64,000 nucleotides of DNA, taken from NCBI GenBank assembly GCA_030704615.1, contig CM060732.1:12958001-13022000 (forward strand), given 5' to 3'. Positions 12,960 to 62,337 of the stretch are shown one piece after another. Position 1 is the first letter of the stretch. Each line of letters starts with the position of its first letter. A program made the position numbers and the translations under genes. The notes under the pieces are model-generated. The model did no database searches. It worked only from the letters and a program-made list of their open reading frames with translations, and was not told the origin of the DNA. This DNA comes from Takakia lepidozioides. Its lineage: Eukaryota; Plantae; Bryophyta.

Positions 12960-13886
<927 letters not shown>

Positions 13887-17852: not shown

Positions 17853-17903
17853 ACCACCAGTCGGTAGCTCAGTTGGATAGAGCACTGAGTGCCACCCAGG
17901 TGA
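17853..17903 (+). mobile_element. 5' fragment of a tRNA-derived SINE (same family as 21312)
   Basis: ACCACCAGTCGGTAGCTCAGTTGG...GCACTGAGTGCCA matches the head of the 21312 SINE. Box A is present; box B and tail are missing. Confidence 0.75.
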
Positions 17904-21311: not shown

Positions 21312-21546
21312 ACCAACAGTCAGTAGCTCAGTTGGTAAAGTGCACTGAGTGCCATCCGGATGACCCTGGGTCAAATCCTGCTACGTGACGGGTGTGGTAC
21401 GCTCTTCTCCCCCTTCCCTGCGCAGTGTCGCATCATAAAGCCTTAAGGCGAGGCTACTGAGAGGTTATTTTCTCCTCTCTCTATCAAGGGGCCGATTCGT
21501 GAGCTGTCGCTCCCAGGTGTTTCCCTTTAAAAAAAAGAAAAGAAAA
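21312..21546 (+). mobile_element. Full-length tRNA-derived SINE with A-rich tail
   Basis: Box A TAGCTCAGTTGG, box B GGGTCAAATCC (21368-21378), unique body and A-rich tail. Body motif GAGGTTATTTT recurs near 46050. Confidence 0.8.
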
Positions 21547-37288: not shown

Positions 37289-37500
37289 TGTGACTAGGTT
37301 AGTATGCCTAGGTTAGTGGCTAAGCAAGGCTGAAGACAGAAAGCCATAACAGAAGCTGAAGAGACTTATGGCTAAGCAAGAGAAAGTAACAGTCAGAATG
37401 GCAAAGGCCAAGTATTAGGCCTTTGGATAGCAAGGGAATATCAAAAGGTATCTTAGAGCAAGTGGAGACCCGTTTACTATAATAAGACAGGACTGTAACA
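37289..37500 (+). repeat. 5' LTR (212 bp, internally deleted)
   Basis: Matches the 3' LTR except for a 4-bp gap and a gap of about 172 bp. Confidence 0.9.
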
Positions 37501-40500
37501 TTTGGTATCAGAGCATAGGTTAGTGGTGGTTGGAGCCTTGGAGGATGGAAGATCCAGAAGATGAGGCACCAGAGAATTCAGGGGGTGAGGCACCAGGAAT
37601 CAGACCTGAATTCAGTCTGCCCCCACCATTGTTGTTTCAACAAGTTCACCAGGAATTTGTGAGGGTTTATGCTGAAATGCAGCGAATCTGCCAAGCTATA
37701 GGGCTCGAAAGACAAGCTGGTCAGGCAGAACCAGTGGGTCGTCGACCTGTGATGAAGGATTTCAATCCACCTCAGTATACAGGCACAGAGTCAGTCCACA
37801 CGGTGGATGCAGTAGAGCAATGGCTCTCTAAAATAGAGCAGTGCCTCCAAATGTGTGGTCATGAGTCAGATGAAGCCAAGATTTCAAATGCCGTCATCTA
37901 TCTATTTGATGGGGCACATAGATGGTGGAGGAAGTTAGGGGCTGATGCTAGACTTCCTGTCACTTGGGCTGATTTCCGTAGGACGTTTGAGTTTTAATTT
38001 CGTACCACCAGATGAGGAGGGTCGGAACATTCAGGCTTGGAGGGCCTTAAAACAAGGTGCGTTTAGTGTTCAAACGCATGCTGACAAGTATCGAGAGCAT
38101 ACTTTGAAGTTGCCTCGAGAAGCTGTGAATGAGCAGGTTCAGGTGACCTTCTTTGTGCAAGGTTTGAGAGATGATATCAGGCCTGATGTATAGAAAGCTA
38201 GGTGTGGGACCTTACAAGAAGCTATAGAGTTAGCACTGATGTATGAAGATGGGCGAAAGGGAAATCGACAAGGTCTGTCAGTGTCCAATGAGGACGGTAG
38301 TAAACCCTCTAGACAAGAGGGTACCAATCAGGCCAAGGTTGGGTTTAAGAGAAAAGAATCCCCTATGGCTGAGAGGGCGTTTCAAAGATCAACCCTAACA
38401 CCGGAGCAAAAAGAGAAGGCCAAGCTCGAAGGTCTTTGTTTTGGGTGTTTAGGGAAGCACCAATGGAAGGATTGCCCACAAAATCACAAGAGGATAGCTA
38501 CCATGCAAGTTGATGAGGTAGCAGAAACGCAAACAGTAAGCCCTCAAGCTATGAGTGGTATCCGTAAGCCTTGTTTGGTAAGCATGAAGAAGACAGTGGT
38601 AGGAGCTGCCGATTGTTTTCTATCGCAGGAAGCAAGTCTGGGATATCAATTCGATTCTGCTCATCTTGTGAAGATGATCGGAGAAGTGGTTGGAGAAAAG
38701 GTCATTGTCTTATTTAACACAGGTTCAACACATAATGTGATCAGTTCTCGGATGGTTAAGAAACTCCATCTTCCCATGGAACCTTCTCAATACCAATATA
38801 CCGTAGAGATGGCTGATGGGAAAGGAACTGAGATATGGGATAACGGATCCCTAGTCTCCAGTTGACCATTCAAGAGTATTGTGAGAACCTGAGCTTTGAA
38901 ATTACCAAGCTGGCTAGATATGACTTGGTGATAGGCAAAGCATGGCATGCCCAAAAGAAGCCTATCATTGATTTCAACACCCATGTGTATCAGTTCCAGC
39001 ATAATGGTAGGACCATTCTGATTCGGGGGGAAAGATATTTGCCGGATACACCATTAATCACAGCCATGAAACTGCACCAAAAAGGTTGTAAGTATCTAAA
39101 CCTATGTTTTTTGCAAGAGGTGTTAGAAGAGCATACTGATACAACTTCAGAGAGTGCATCATCTAGTCGGGCTCATAGAATTCAGGCTGAATTCTCAGAT
39201 GTGTTCTGTTCTGAGCTACCAAGTATATTACCTCCAAAAAGAAATGTGGAGCATAGGATTGAGTTTATTCCAGGGTCTAGTCCTATGTGTAGACCTCCTT
39301 GTAGGACCAGTTTTAAACAAGAAAAGGTGGTTGAAGGTATCTTAGAGGAGTATTTGAGTTAGGTCATGTTCGACCAAGTTATCCTCCATTTGCTGCTCCA
39401 GTTCTTTTGGTTCCTAAGAAGGATGGATCGTACAGGATGTGTATTGACTACCGAGGATTGAATAAGATTATTGTTAAACACCGTTACCCAATGCCGCGTA
39501 TCGGTGATTTGATGGATGCCTTGCATAGAGCCTCTCTCTTCAGTAAGATTGACTTAAAGAGTGGGTACCATCAAATCAGGATACGAGAAGAGGATGTGTT
39601 TAAAACAGCCTTTCGAACAAGATTTGGTCACTATGAGCTTTTGGTTATGCCATTTGGGTTAACCAATGCTCCAGCAACATTCATGATGCTCATGAATGAT
39701 ATTTTGAGACCTTTCATGGGTAAGTTTGCGGTGGATTTTATTGATGACATTCTTGTCTACAGTAGAACCATTGAGGATCAGGTTGGTCACCTTCATCAAG
39801 TTTTGATTACATTATGAGCAGCTAAATTTTACGCGAATGTAAGCAAGTGTGCTTTATTCAAACTAGAGGTGGAGTATCTTGGGCATATAGTGTCAGTAAA
39901 GGGAGTAAGAATGGATCCCAAGAAGATAGAAGTTATACTCCAATGGCCTAGGCCCCTTGGGGTAACACCTTTGAAATCTTTTTTGGGGTTGGCTGGGTTC
40001 TATCAGACATATGTTGAGAATCACTCAAAGATAGCAACCCCAATGACTAATTTGTTACAAGGTAACAAGGGATTTGATTGGATTGAAGTACAACAAAAAA
40101 GTTTTGATCTAATGAAGCATGCAGTTGCTACTGCACCTGTACTAGCAATTGTAGATCCTCATAAATCTTTTGTAGTGGAAACAGATGCAAGTGGCATAGC
40201 AATTGGTGTTGTTCTCAGTCAAGAGGGTAGCCCAATCGCTTTTGAAAGTAGGAAACTGAATCCAGCTCAACGACGGTATCCACTCATGAGCAAGAGTTAC
40301 ATGCGATAATCTATGCTTTAAAGGTGTGGAGGCATTATCTGTATGGGGCACTATTCACAATTTATACGGATCACAAGACCCTTACTTATTTGTGTAACCA
40401 GCCTGATCTCTCGGGACGTCAAGCTAGATGGTCAAAATTGATGCAGGAATTTCACATGGAAATTCTATATAGGAAAGATAAGGAGAATGTGGTCGTTGAT

Positions 40501-42057
40501 GCACTATCTCGGATTATGTATCAGATGAGTGTTACCGTAATACAAAGCACTCTTATTGCTGAAATAAGAGTAGCCCAAGACAAGGATGAGTATATCTAGG
40601 CAGTGTGGCAGAAGGTTAACCAAAGTACTAATGCACAAAAAGAGAATTTGGTTCAGCCAAAGTCCACGGCAGAAATTCAGACGTATGCATCATATAGCAT
40701 TGAAGGCGGGGTGCTGAAACGAAATGGGAAGATCTATGTGCCTAATCTCCAAGAGCTTCGTAAGAAGGTTCTTAGAGAATGTCATGATAGCCCTAGTGCG
40801 GGGCACCCTGGGGTTGAGAAAACCTATGAGCTAGTAAGACGGCAATTTTGGTGGCCTAAGCTCAAGACAAGTGCATACGAGTATGTGATACATTGTTCCA
40901 CATGTCAAGTTACTAAAGCAGATTGCCGAAAATCTCCAAGATTTTTGCATCCTTTGGAAATTCCACAAGATAGGTGGGAGAGCATTTCTATGGATTTTAT
41001 CACTGACTTGCCTAAAACACAGAGGGGGAAAGATGCAGTTCTGGTGGTGGTGGACAGATTCTCTAAAATGGCACATTTTATTCCTACCAAGAAGATGGTC
41101 GAAGCACCTGAGGTAGCAGAATTGTTCATTAAGAATATCTATCGGTTACATGGATTGGCCAAGTCCATAGTGTCGGACAGAGATCCTAGATTTACAAGTC
41201 ATTTTTGGACAGCGGTTTTCCAAATTCTGGAAACCCAGTTGAGCATGAGTAGTGGAGATCATCCACAAAGTGATGGACAGACTTAGCAGGTCAACCAAGT
41301 GTTAGAGGATATGTTGAGATCCTATGTGGGTGAGAGACAAAAGTATTTGCCATTGTTGGAGTTTGCCTACAATGACAAGAAACATTCTTCTACAGGAGTA
41401 AGTCCATTCGAGCTACTATATGGATATAGACCAGCCAGCCCAATTACTATTGGTATTTCAAAAAGTGATGTACCAAGTGCAAAGGAGTTTGTAACTTAGA
41501 TGCAAGAATGGCTAGCAAGTGCAAGACTAAATATTCGCAAAGCCTTAGACAAGGCAAAGACATATGCGGATAAGAAACGCACATTCAGAGAGTTTGAGGA
41601 AGGGGATAAAGTGTTTCTTTTGATCCCACCTTCAGCCGCAACCCTTAAGGAAGGGAAGAGCAAAAGGAAGAGCTGCAAAAAGTTATCCCCTAGATATTAT
41701 GGACCTTGGCTAATTGTGAAACGAATCAATGATGTGGCATACAAACTAGAGCTTCCAGTTTTATGCAAGATATATCCAGTTTTTTACGTTAGTAAGCTCA
41801 AGAAGTACTTGCACAATGGAGATAATTTAGTGGAAGGCACCAAACTTCTAAAAGAGGTTAACAATGATGAGCATGGACCATGGCGAATCTTGGAGAGAAG
41901 AGAGCGCAGATTACATCTTTGGCTCATCAAGGAAGTTTTGATTGTTTGGCATTGGCTTCCTCTTACGGATGCTACTTGGGAGTCAGAGGAAACAATCAAG
42001 AAACAGTACCCAGACTTTGTCATTGAGGACAATGACCAATCTTGAAGGGGTAGAGAA

Positions 42058-42445
42058 TGTAACAGACTAGGTTAGTATGCCTAGGTTAGTGGCTAAGCAA
42101 GGCTAAAGACAAAAAGCCATAACAAAAGCTGAAGTGACTTATGGCTAAGTAAGAGAAAGTAACAGCCAGAATGGCAAAGGCCAAGTATTAAGCCTTTGGA
42201 TAGCAAGGGAATATCAAAAGGTATCTTAGAGCAAGGGGGGGAGTTCTTGGGGAGTATTTAGGAGGACCTGGTGTGACACTCTGGAGGAGGACACGGGCCT
42301 GCAGGGCTGAGAACAAAGTAGTCAGTTGGTCTTGGTAAACATTCCTTAGCAAGTGGCAAGTAGAGAACTCTAGGTTGGGTGGTGAACTTGCTTATCCAGT
42401 GTTTATGTGGAGACCCGTTTACTATAATAAGACAGGACTGTAACA
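42058..42445 (+). repeat. 3' LTR (388 bp)
   Basis: TGTAACA...TGTAACA, preceded by the PPT and followed by TSD GGAAG. Confidence 0.92.
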
Positions 42446-42938
42446 GGAAGCCTGTCAAATGTTGCTTTCCGCAGTGGGTATTTGGTGGTTGTAGACTCTT
42501 GGATGGAAAGTTAGCGAAGAAAGCTTTTCTTACAATGTCTGGTGTGTTTGCTGATAGAGAGAATGAACTGAAATGGTACTTCATATATCCGTTGGAAGCT
42601 CAAAGAGGTTATGGGACAAAATGAATTTTATTAATATCCACAGAGCCAAGGCAGTGGATGACGACTTGTATGATATACGTAGGGGCAACAACATTTTCTA
42701 CAAAGAAGGCACAACGGAAGGAGCTATTTGCTGTAGAATATGGCTGATTGGAATCCAATTGCTCCAAATTAAAATGTTGAGAAATTTTGACTACATAGTC
42801 TCATTGGTTGCTTCATGTGATATTGTCTGGGCAACAAGATGGCCAATAAAGAAGTCTGAATTCGAGTGCGCTTACGTCAGTCTTCCCACTTGAAAACTGA
42901 AGGATCGTGTCAAACATTTGTCAATCGTTGGTGTTAAA

Positions 42939-43102
42939 AGTATGACGCCTCCCGAAGGGAGCGTAACTTATGGTGTCACTTGACCCCGAAGGGCTACTGC
43001 CTTCCAGCAGGAAGGTGGACACCTTCATGACACACTAGACGGTGGTTTGAACCCACAACCACATCCAATGTGGTATGTGCCCGGGGCTACATGCTGGTTG
43101 TC
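42939..43102 (-). mobile_element. tRNA-headed SINE with a structured 3' module and T-tract end
   Basis: TSD TTGGTGTTAA(A) at 42928 and 43103. Minus-strand box B GGGTTCAAACC (43044-43054) and a degenerate box A. 3' hairpins with TTCG loops; ends in a T-tract. Confidence 0.75.
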
Positions 43103-43112
43103 TTGGTGTTAA

Positions 43113-44467
43113 CCCTTAAAGGACGAGCTATTTTTTGGGTGGGCCCACTAAAAAAAGGTGCATACCCTTATGGACGAGGGTGTAACTTTTTACCCCCAAT
43201 CATCCATGGGGATGAACCTTATACTTATGTGCATATCTACTAGATCCATGTCCTGTCAAAAACATAGGCAAACGTTGCATTCGGGAGATTATAACAAACT
43301 AATATGCCCCAATTTGTAAATACATTCAAAAATTGCATGGAAAAAATTATTTGACCACAAAATTGAAGTATCGAGTTGAATCGAACTTAATGGATGAGTG
43401 TGATCTGACAGTACTTTTGCTGGCTCCGGCGACATGGGCTCCTCCGACCGGGGCCCCTGTCAAATCCTCCCCACCCCCTTTTACCTCGGTTTCACTATTT
43501 AAATACTTATGAATCCGAATGGGTTACAAGTTGTGGTGGGTAGCGTGATGGTAAGGTGATAGCAATGGAGGCGGCGAGGTTCTGCATTCAATTCTTAATG
43601 GTAGGCTTTGGCAGTGTAACCTTGGTTGATGTAACCCTCCACTTGGTGTAACCCTCTAAAACCCCGATTTCTGGTTGGGCCATTTTATACTTAACCACAT
43701 TTGGACTTAGTCAAATTTCGAGACCAAGTGTGGGTTACACCAACTGGAGTACACTCCATTCTGTGTAACCCCGAGTGGAGTTACACACCTCGTCGTGTAA
43801 CCCGATGTAACCCTGACTGGAGTTGTCACTCTTTCAGTTCCATGTAACTCTCGAGAGAGGGTGGGGAAGATTTGACATGCCGGAAACCGGCGTACCATCC
43901 TGTCAGATGGTGCCATCCATGCACATGTGTATTAAGTTCTTACGTTATGCCTATTATCTTCCCCAAGAAAATCAGACCAAAATTCCAAAAATTCAGTTTG
44001 AGCTTCCTTTCTTGAATTTTGTGATGGATATCAAGTTACATCTGGACATGACATAGGTATGGTATGCTGCTTTGTATGTGAAATCTGGGGGGTAAATTAT
44101 CTTGTTTTGGCTACTTTCCCAATTACACCCATGAGGTGACATTTGTTTTCCAATTCCTCTGGTAAGTAAGTGCACAGTAACATTTCATGGTGCCTTGTCC
44201 AAATTTTTTGGCATTATGACAAAAAATTTCAGCCCTAGATGTTATCTTGAAGATTGCCCATTTGGCTGCCACGTAGGCAGGTCAATGGTGCTCTAACAGT
44301 GGATTTCCTGGAACCACTTTGCAAAATTCTAGGGAGCAGAGCTTTTATGATTTTGGGCACTGTAAATTCTCACATGTGCTCCTCTCTGACATCTACAATT
44401 CATCTTCAAGGTTCACTTCCATCCACTATCATCCATGGGAACTGGAGCGTGGCAAATCCTTTAGGGG
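43113..44467. mobile_element. TTAA-flanked non-autonomous DNA transposon, piggyBac-like
   Basis: TTAA|CCCTTAAAGGA ... TCCTTTAGGGG|TTAA (TIR match 10/11). Terminal motif is repeated at 43165-43178. Removing the element restores an 11-bp TSD of the adjacent SINE. Confidence 0.7.
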
Positions 44468-59500: not shown

Positions 59501-61437
59501 AAGCCCAAGAGAGTGCTTTATTAGACCCATGTCTGTCATCTCGAAATGTTTCTTGATCTCCGACCGTGTCCATTACAGTTTGTTGTCGTGGTTGCCATAA
59601 AGATAGACATCATCTACATACATCATGAGTTTAATCCATAGGTTCCAAATGACAAATCAATTTGTCAATGTAAGTAGACCATTATAATGTCCATAAAAGT
59701 AAGTACCAATACTCAAAATTTAGATCAATTGCACAAGTGCACATGTTTAATACGGTTGAAAAGGCAGTCCACAAAATCCGGTTTCAAATAGCTCGAACAT
59801 GATGTATCTATTTTGTAATCCAACAATTGGTACATGTATATATTACATTTGACAATTCTGAACCATGTACAATTGCATGAAATAGTGAGTATTTAGAAAA
59901 ATATGGGTGGTACCGGGGACCATGGTACTATAAAATTAGTACGATGAAGTCCATTTTCATCCACCCTACCCTACATTCACCCTTCTTACAAGATGGTAAG
60001 TTTGTGAGCGTTTAGGTATTATTGTCATGTATTGATGCCATCTGCTCCTCCATGGCTTGGACCCATCTCTGATTTGAAGCTGTTTCAGAGAAGGTTGCAT
60101 GCTTGTAAAAGGTTATGAGGTCCAATTCGGTATTGAAGATAAAACGGCATTTCAATTTGGTCAACGATGTCCTGGATCGAGGGGAAAGGGCGTAGGTATG
60201 GCTAGGAGGACGTAAGTTTTCCTGCAAATGACTTGACCTACTAGAGTTGTTTAAAGATGGATGTGAAAGTGGTATGCTAGGAGTGTCGTGAGGACCTGCA
60301 GTAGATTGAGAGTTGGCAAGTATTTGGGAGTCACGGGGTCTTAACTCAAAACCAAGACTGGCATGAGACATAATCCTCGACGGTCCATCCAGTAATGGAG
60401 TGATTGGGTTGTCGGAGTATGTAGAATGAGTGTGGTTGTTTGTGCCAGGATGGTCTTGCGATTTGTTTCCCCGTATATCATTGTATGTTTCATCAGTTCA
60501 CTCAAGAGTCGGGATACCTTTGCCCTAGAATACTGATATTAGGTCCCTTCTTTGAGGTGGGCATCTTCTCGGATTATTATCATTCTCATCTTGGGGTGGT
60601 AGCATTGATAGTCTTTAGCATCATAGCCCAAAAAGACTCAAAGAAGGGATTTAGGATCTAGCTTTTTTCGCCTCTCATCAGGAATGTGAACATGTGCAAT
60701 GCTCCCAAAGATTCTTAGTTTGATCAATTCACCATAAAATCGTTCGTCTAGGGTCATACCTTGATTGGCACCTTGATTAGCCTTGGTGGGAGACATATTT
60801 GTAAGCTGGTTTGCAATGTTCAGGGCCTCAATCTACAAATATTTTTGCACACCCATTAATTCATACACCATATATGGCCCTCGCTTTCTCTATTATGATT
60901 CAATTCTTCCATTCTGCAACATTGTTTTGATATGAGGTGTAGGATTGAGTTATTTGTCTGTTGGTTCTCTGTTCATCACAAATTGACATGAAATTCTCAG
61001 AAAGATACTTCCTCGATCACTTCTGAGGCATTTGATTCTCTTGCGAGTGAGATTCTCCACAATTGCTTCAAATTTCTTAAAGTAAGAAAATGCTTGAAGC
61101 TCCTGCTTCAAGAAGTAGACCTATCCCTTCCAGCTGTGATCATCGATGAATGTCAAGAAGTATTGTGCCCCACTATGTGATTTGCAGAATGCGGACCACA
61201 TATGGCAGAGTGTATGAGTTCAATATCTGAGCAACTCTATGTGTTGCTTGTTTTAGAGTCATTTCTTAATGTTATTTCTCCTCCATGCATCCCTAATAGA
61301 TGTGTGAAGATAGATCGATTGGAGATTCGGAGGTATGCTAGTGGCCAGGCCCTTTGCGGAAAAGAAGTGTACACTTGGAGAGTTAAGTGTCCAAGTCTAT
61401 GGTATCATAGCCAAGAAGGATCTTCGCAAACTAAGCA

Positions 61438-61603
61438 GAGAGATAAGACTCCGGCCGAAGCCGGCGTAACTAAGAGCCACTTCGCCTCACGGCTACTGCA
61501 CCCTTTTGGGGGTGGGCCCTATAAAAGAAACGGGTGTCCAGGGGACACCGGGTAACCAGGGGGAAGTAGTAGATATGATAGCAGTACCTAGGGTACCTAG
61601 GAT
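61438..61603 (-). mobile_element. Short retroposed insert with a structured 3' module
   Basis: 12-bp TSD GCAAACTAAGCA (61426-61437, 61604-61615) inside copia pol. Several hairpins; module is homologous in structure to 42941-43024. Confidence 0.8.
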
Positions 61604-62337
61604 GCAAACTAAGCAAATTGAGTTGATATTCTTTGCTACAAAGTGTATTTGGTAATTATGTATAGCCCAGTTGTTTGGTCCCACGTCGTTAGTCTCTCAT
61701 AAGCAAACATTGGTTGTCATTAAAGATCAAGATTAGGCAGATATCCCACTCAGAGCAAATTCTGGGTGAGATCCAGCACGTAGAGAATATTATCAATATT
61801 TATTTCCCCATTTCTAAAAGAAGATTTGTAGTGCCTTCGCCCTCAATGGCATGAGGTTCTCCTCCCGCATTCTTAACATGTGAGTGCGTGATCTCTGGGG
61901 GAGCTATTAAATGAAACGTTGTTTTCTCCTCTGCTACATGCCTAGATGCACCTGGGTCGACGTACCAATCTATCTCATTCACCTCTTTCATTGGTGGATT
62001 TGCTCTGGTTGATCGATCTAACTTCTACTGTGACGTTGGCCTACGGACGATGCACAATATTGCAGTGCTCTTGAGCTCTCTTTGCCATCTCATTTGCCAG
62101 CTCGGAATAGCTCTGCATGAGGTGTCCCATGCCACCGCTGATTCTAAAAGTTGCATGGTCCAATTTTTTTTTTGTCATTCGATGTCTAGAAGTATTTATT
62201 TGATTTGCTCCTAAATTGACGTTGACATTGGTAATCAGAATGTTGAAAAGAGTGATTCATCATTCTTCCCATGAGAGCTTCGGAGTTGTCACTTCCTCCC
62301 ATCGTCTTGGCTCTAAATATGCGAGTCTGCTTTCTTC

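Follow-up and report, generated by a model that had tools for sequence, protein, structure and literature searches.

Stringent-type 3' tails are known from the eel pair UnaL2/UnaSINE1 and as CR1, L2 and RTE-type tails. Retroelements also carry ribozymes, which are HDV-like in R2/L1Tc-type LINEs and hammerheads in Penelope-like elements and retrozymes. In Chlamydomonas reinhardtii, SINEX-1/2/4/5/6_CR share their 3' tails with RandI/Dualen LINEs (Ohshima 2013, PMC3747384), and (T)n ends occur in several plant SINEs (PMC3747384). Recognition of a 3' stem-loop by the reverse transcriptases (RTs) of stringent LINEs is described in PMC5135761. The LINEs listed for land plants in a recent review are confined to L1 and RTE, and the SINEs are mostly of the poly(A) type (PMC9033089). 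SINEs that take a specific 3' tail from a non-L1 LINE and themselves end in short repeats are already well established.

The DNA analysed here, referred to as the window, is a stretch of 64 kb from Takakia lepidozioides (assembly GCA_030704615.1, contig CM060732.1, positions 12,958,001 to 13,022,000), in which positions are counted from the first letter. A preliminary description of this sequence had reported a multi-helix RNA module, conserved between two short retroposons and possibly recognised by an RT or catalytic. Literature on moss SINEs, on Dualen/RandI in mosses and on Takakia repeats was searched, and no description of this tail was found.

Two copies of the module

Both copies, A and B, are located on the minus strand with the positions and sequences originally assigned to them, and consist of the following parts.

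42944-43023, minus strand: module A, about 80 nt, at the 3' end of element A
43019-43023 with 42972-42976, minus strand: P1 of A
43010-43015 with 43000-43005, minus strand: P2 of A
42995-42999, minus strand: J2/3 of A, CAGUA
42991-42994 with 42983-42986, minus strand: P3 of A
42977-42982, minus strand: CAAGUG of A
42962-42968, minus strand: AGUUACG of A
42948-42961, minus strand: P4 hairpin of A
42944-42946, minus strand: GUC of A
61447-61520, minus strand: module B, at the 3' end of element B
61516-61520 with 61473-61477, minus strand: P1 of B
61508-61512 with 61499-61503, minus strand: P2 of B, with one C.U
61494-61498, minus strand: CAGUA of B
61491-61493 with 61484-61486, minus strand: P3 of B, with a GUGA loop
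61478-61483, minus strand: GAAGUG of B
61465-61471, minus strand: AGUUACG of B
61460-61464 with 61451-61455, minus strand: P4 of B, with a UUCG loop
61447-61449, minus strand: GUC of B

The linker pattern GCAGTAG..AAGTG..AGTTACG had two matches in the 64-kb window, A and B only, compared with a chance expectation of 0.00 from 100 shuffles. Two covariance models, one built from A alone and one from A and B together, were run on the window with filters off, and each matched only A and B; the score of B against the A-only model was 29 bits (E 4e-6). The linkers CCAC, GCAGUA, AAGUG, AGUUACG and GUC are common to both copies, as had been claimed, with 25 of 26 positions identical and a sole difference, C in A and G in B, preceding AAGUG. 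The loops (UGCU/AAAA, UUCG/GUGA and UUC(G)/UUCG in A/B) have no sequence relation to each other, and the exchange of a UUCG loop in A for a GNRA loop in B (GUGA), also part of the original claim, is seen in P3.

Elements that end in the module

The carriers had been characterized as two dissimilar short retroposons. This is correct, as the elements are 165 and 166 nt long, are flanked by perfect duplications of 10 and 12 bp, and have 5' halves that cannot be aligned.

42938-43102, minus strand: element A, 165 nt, with a tRNA-like head, the module and a short U-rich tail
43103-43112, minus strand: upstream target-site duplication of A, TTAACACCAA, an exact repeat of 42928-42937
43031-43102, minus strand: degenerate tRNA-like head of A, with the B box GGGTTCAAACC kept and the A box mostly deleted
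42936-42943, minus strand: tail of A, AUAC and UUUU, the T run overlapping the start of the duplication
42928-42937, minus strand: downstream target-site duplication of A, perfect 10 bp
61438-61603, minus strand: element B, 166 nt, with an unrelated head and the 3' module
61604-61615, minus strand: upstream target-site duplication of B, TGCTTAGTTTGC, an exact repeat of 61426-61437
61426-61437, minus strand: downstream target-site duplication of B, perfect 12 bp

Nothing structured follows the module in either element, only a short pyrimidine-rich tail and then the duplication. The stretch between GUC and the duplication comprises 6 nt in A (AUACUU) and 9 nt in B (UUAUCUCUC, pyrimidine-rich), the arrangement of a stringent tail. 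The T run after module A could be an RNA polymerase III (Pol III) terminator. Element B has only the duplications and the tail and lacks a Pol III promoter head: no A or B box was found in its head by eye, and there was no ARAGORN or Rfam match. B may be either the end of a 5'-truncated LINE or a SINE whose head is of no recognised type. Remnants of a Copia-type element, with the RT motif MMYVDDV and an integrase-like stretch, were observed at about 59600-61150 on the minus strand; their immediate upstream neighbour on this strand is element B, which may have inserted into them.

Repeat family of element A

Public contigs of the same organism were aligned to positions 42500-43500 at a likeness of at least 80 %. 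In one DNA run, approximately 3,100 contig pieces aligned; the repeated span was 42937-43082, where depth, summed across contigs, reached 4,000-9,000 times that of single-copy sequence (58.8), a ratio that is not a copy number. Beyond 43082, the consensus of the other copies, read on the element strand, includes TAGCCCAGTGGTAAT, an A box, and the A box of the family consensus derived from contig loose ends is TAGCCCAGTGG. About 8-9 nt of the A box are missing from the window copy, indicating that it is a dead copy. No tRNA was detected by ARAGORN at default settings or by Rfam; for ARAGORN to draw a cloverleaf, and then a degenerate one, the threshold had to be relaxed and the head rebuilt from the family consensus. 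Judged by its A and B boxes, a length below 500 nt, target-site duplications and dispersed copies, family A is classed as a tRNA-derived SINE of high copy number.

On the 3' side of the module, other copies continue into T-rich sequence (loose ends at 42936, 42941 and 42952), indicating that the tail of the family is U-rich, and the 3' end of one subfamily is GCGUC-CAC-U10. The best-supported family variants listed were located in the P2 loop (43006, 43008 and 43009) and, as an indel at 42988, in the P3 loop; also among the variants listed were a stem variant, 43011 C>U, that retains pairing as G.U, and C or G at 42982, before AAGUG, and rarer variants may fall in the linkers.

Element A is flanked by two further repeated stretches, at 43105-43330 and 42568-42635, which belong to other repeat families and in which contig depth exceeds the single-copy level by a factor of tens to hundreds. 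Element A is also situated about 700 bp past the 3' LTR of a Gypsy/Ty3 LTR retrotransposon (37292-42238, plus strand). The LTRs of this retrotransposon (174 bp, at 37292-37465 and 42065-42238) are 95 % identical, and its broken ORFs contain protease, RT, H2C2 integrase, an SH3_Tf2-1 domain and a chromodomain; no relative of the integrase with more than 67 % identity was found in the protein collection. A 42-aa translation across the SINE had no protein match. Elsewhere in the window, an intronless gene (12963-13733, minus strand) encodes a 257-aa NAD(P)-binding protein of the At5g02240-like type, with 75-79 % identity to its nearest relatives in mosses, liverworts and angiosperms (among them Sphagnum, Ceratodon, Physcomitrium and Marchantia); the nearest Sphagnum gene likewise has a single exon.

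A module that behaves as a unit

Contigs of the DNA run were also found to leave the alignment within element A. In 42 contigs the match ended at 43025, two bases 5' of P1, where they passed into other upstream sequence, and a further 33 diverged at 43005, having another P1 5' strand with the same CCAC and P2. Together with the unrelated head of B, these junctions indicate that several families carry the module and that it acts as a unit. The module lies at the 3' end of both SINE-like retroposons, different as they are, and this position fits the RT-recognition role suggested in the preliminary description. Beyond the window, covariance models detected no module in 74 kb of sequence (two contigs from ENA, one from Logan and two loci of Sphagnum), a sample too small to be informative.

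A second tRNA-like head, GTCAGTAGCTCAGTTGG, with a B-box-like sequence, GGGTCAAATCC, was observed on the plus strand at 21318-21545 and at 17859-17900. The head at 21318 is followed about 200 nt further on by an A-rich tail, and the two loci probably represent a further SINE family, one that ends in the manner of poly(A) elements. Neither covariance model detected a module at these two loci.

Helices and covariation

Four helices are common to A and B. P1 closes a three-way junction bearing the hairpins P2 and P3, and the junction is followed on its 3' side by AGUUACG, the hairpin P4, NGUC and the short pyrimidine tail. MAFFT alignments of A and B put the stems out of register, and a model-based alignment and coordinates were used instead. 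From the model-based alignment alone, RNAalifold recovered the same four helices and added an extension of P1, C.AC/GUG with one bulged C, and an extension of P4, AC/GU, which explains the fixed 'GU' of GUC.

The preliminary description had stated that the stems differ in sequence and mostly keep their pairing, and both parts of this statement were borne out. Pairs were counted by coordinates with the last hairpin of A taken as a UUC triloop. Among the 18 pairs in this register, eight were unchanged, one had a one-sided change, eight had changed on both sides and were still paired, and one, the C.U at the base of P2 in B, was broken. With the last hairpin of A taken as a UUCG tetraloop, like that of B, A has one C.A mismatch, 92 % of cells were paired and six double changes were counted, compared with 0-2 double changes and 40-62 % pairing in controls in which the 3' partner was slid by 1-3 columns. 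Across both registers, 6-8 double changes were kept paired among 18-20 pairs, with 1-2 pairs broken. A contig variant (loose end at 42998) has U-A at the site of the C.A mismatch, which favours the tetraloop register for P4 of A. The probability of so many retained double changes by chance was roughly 0.002 for the triloop register and, as a rough estimate, about 0.04 for the tetraloop register. Covariation between these two sequences supports the helices to a degree that depends on the register of the last hairpin of A, and is suggestive but not conclusive.

Folding energy by itself was unremarkable, with z of -2.3 (A) and -0.9 (B), and A folds equally well when its plus strand is taken (z of -3.4). 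The strand of the RNA is set by other features, and these agree with the minus-strand reading proposed at the outset: three cUUCGg loops and one GNRA loop are absent from the opposite strand; the tRNA-like head and the U-rich tail have minus-strand polarity, as do the target-site duplications; and G.U pairs, one per copy, were counted among these features. Possible pseudoknots pair GUUAC with GUAGC and GUG(A/G)C with GUUAC. The first of these had been noted before and involves invariant bases only, beyond the reach of covariation.

An AGUA/GAA internal loop of the loop-E (sarcin-ricin) type had been recognised in the module. Copy B fits this motif, with C-AGUA-G opposite C-GAA-G beside a short GNRA-capped helix, whereas copy A has CAA instead of GAA, and the reading is weaker than claimed. 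When contig depth in the DNA run was summed at the corresponding position of family A (42982, before AAGUG), about 62 % was C and about 38 % was G, showing that much of the family shares CAA with A; the G variant reached 60-73 % in two runs that are guessed to be RNA. A further difference from loop E is that the closing C-G pair competes here with the C.AC/GUG extension of P1.

Discussion

The module is probably a 3' recognition domain that is shared by several SINE families and was, most likely, borrowed from a stringent-type LINE. Both boxes of the tRNA-like head and a T run past the module are observed, and we infer that Pol III starts transcription of a family-A SINE from these A and B boxes and stops at this run. 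The last approximately 80 nt of this RNA would fold into the three-way junction, with P1 extended by C.AC/GUG and with P2 and P3 branching off; P3 would lead into an internal loop of the AGUA/GAA type, followed by P4, capped by cUUCGg and closed by AC/GU. Compensatory changes back the helices of this fold, and its tertiary structure is a prediction. Contact with the protein would be made through the linkers, which are invariant and single-stranded. A LINE RT would bind this handle in trans and prime cDNA on the U-rich tail at a nicked target, and copying in trans by such a putative enzyme would leave target-site duplications of 10-12 bp like those seen at both elements. Between families, the stems would drift with compensation and the contacts would stay fixed. 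A six-frame scan for RT motifs and a Pfam search of ten long ORFs detected no LINE RT in the 64-kb window, only RTs of Gypsy and Copia elements.

If the LINE partnership is true, an early-diverging land plant would possess a structurally rich RT-recognition RNA that combines a three-way junction, a loop-E-like internal loop and UNCG and GNRA caps. The thousands of copies and the subfamilies would then provide covariation data for a three-dimensional model of template choice by a non-L1 RT, and the module would offer a compact handle for engineering retrotransposition.

The presence of one module on different heads, together with the lack of a LINE in the 64-kb window, would also be expected of a LINE-independent SINE domain that recombination or template switching has carried from one SINE family to another, as exemplified by CORE, Deu and the Angio-domain. 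Its role would then be in the stability or transport of SINE RNA or in Pol III termination and not in RT recognition, and plants offer precedents in Au, p-SINE and the Angio-domain, conserved 3' domains that have a (T)n tail and for which no LINE partner is known. However, the module is located at the extreme 3' end, the site of RT priming, and we consider this explanation unlikely.

The multi-helix architecture, the invariant junction nucleotides and the possible pseudoknots would suit an RNA that cleaves itself or is processed by the host, whether as a new ribozyme class or as a substrate of the RNase P/Z type; cleavage at the base of the junction would free a minimal retrotransposition-competent RNA. 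The suggestion of catalysis made in the preliminary description gained nothing in its favour, since no Rfam ribozyme family matched either copy at E<=10. The accompanying statement that the module differs from the hammerhead, HDV, twister, pistol and hairpin cores agrees with the lack of a match to the models of these classes, of twister-sister and hatchet and of the other ribozyme families in Rfam 15, and neither hammerhead core string, CUGANGA or GAAA, occurs on either strand. The catalytic unit of known LINE ribozymes lies, to our knowledge, at the 5' end and not in the tail. The linker pattern matched at 52 loci in metagenome contigs and at 20 loci in viral contigs, and these matches also count against a processed RNA of this kind, as they lack the flanking stems of the module as well as CCAC and GUC and were rejected as chance matches. 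A processed RNA is therefore a very unlikely explanation, and a module that is at once an RT handle and a self- or RNase-processed RNA, possibly of a new ribozyme class, is a highly improbable one.

The AGUA/GAA motif and some short strings are reminiscent of the loop E region of 5S rRNA, but descent from a captured piece of cellular structured RNA (5S rRNA, SRP RNA, snRNA or a novel ncRNA), with conservation reflecting ancestry only, is barely plausible, as no 5S, SRP, snRNA or other Rfam family was found at E<=10 and the compensatory changes between A and B argue for ongoing selection on pairing within mobile elements. Rfam 15 gave no match at gathering scores over the window, and around A and B at E<=10 there were only sub-threshold chance matches to miRNA and sRNA families. 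Resemblances to hammerhead, hairpin and HDV-like ribozymes, 5S rRNA, SRP RNA and U-snRNAs were considered, and none was backed by Rfam.

Comparison with known systems

Like the retroelement ribozymes, the module is a compact multi-helix RNA on a retroelement, but it is positioned at the 3' and not the 5' end and has no Rfam match. Family A resembles the Au, p-SINE and Angio-domain SINEs of seed plants in being a tRNA-derived plant SINE with a conserved domain at the 3' side and an end of the (T)n kind. Neither Au nor p-SINE has a LINE tail on record. In angiosperms the Angio-domain is a 37-bp block, and its sequence is probably unrelated to the module.

The module resembles stringent-type LINE/SINE tails, which the LINE RT recognises and SINEs borrow, in combining a conserved RNA structure at the 3' terminus with a short repeat behind it. 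These signals are usually a single stem-loop, whereas here a three-way junction and a separate hairpin extend over about 80 nt and include roughly 25 invariant unpaired bases. The resemblance to the Chlamydomonas SINEX/RandI system lies in the green-lineage host, the tRNA derivation of some of the elements, a specific 3' tail and a short end that is not poly(A). Unlike the SINEX families, however, the elements described here belong to a land plant and have a U- or CU-rich tail in place of (ATT)n or (CTTT)n, and while SINEX share their tail with a non-L1 LINE, the partner LINE proposed here is a postulated one. The principle of a shared tail is known, and what sets this example apart is the complexity of the tail and its land-plant host.
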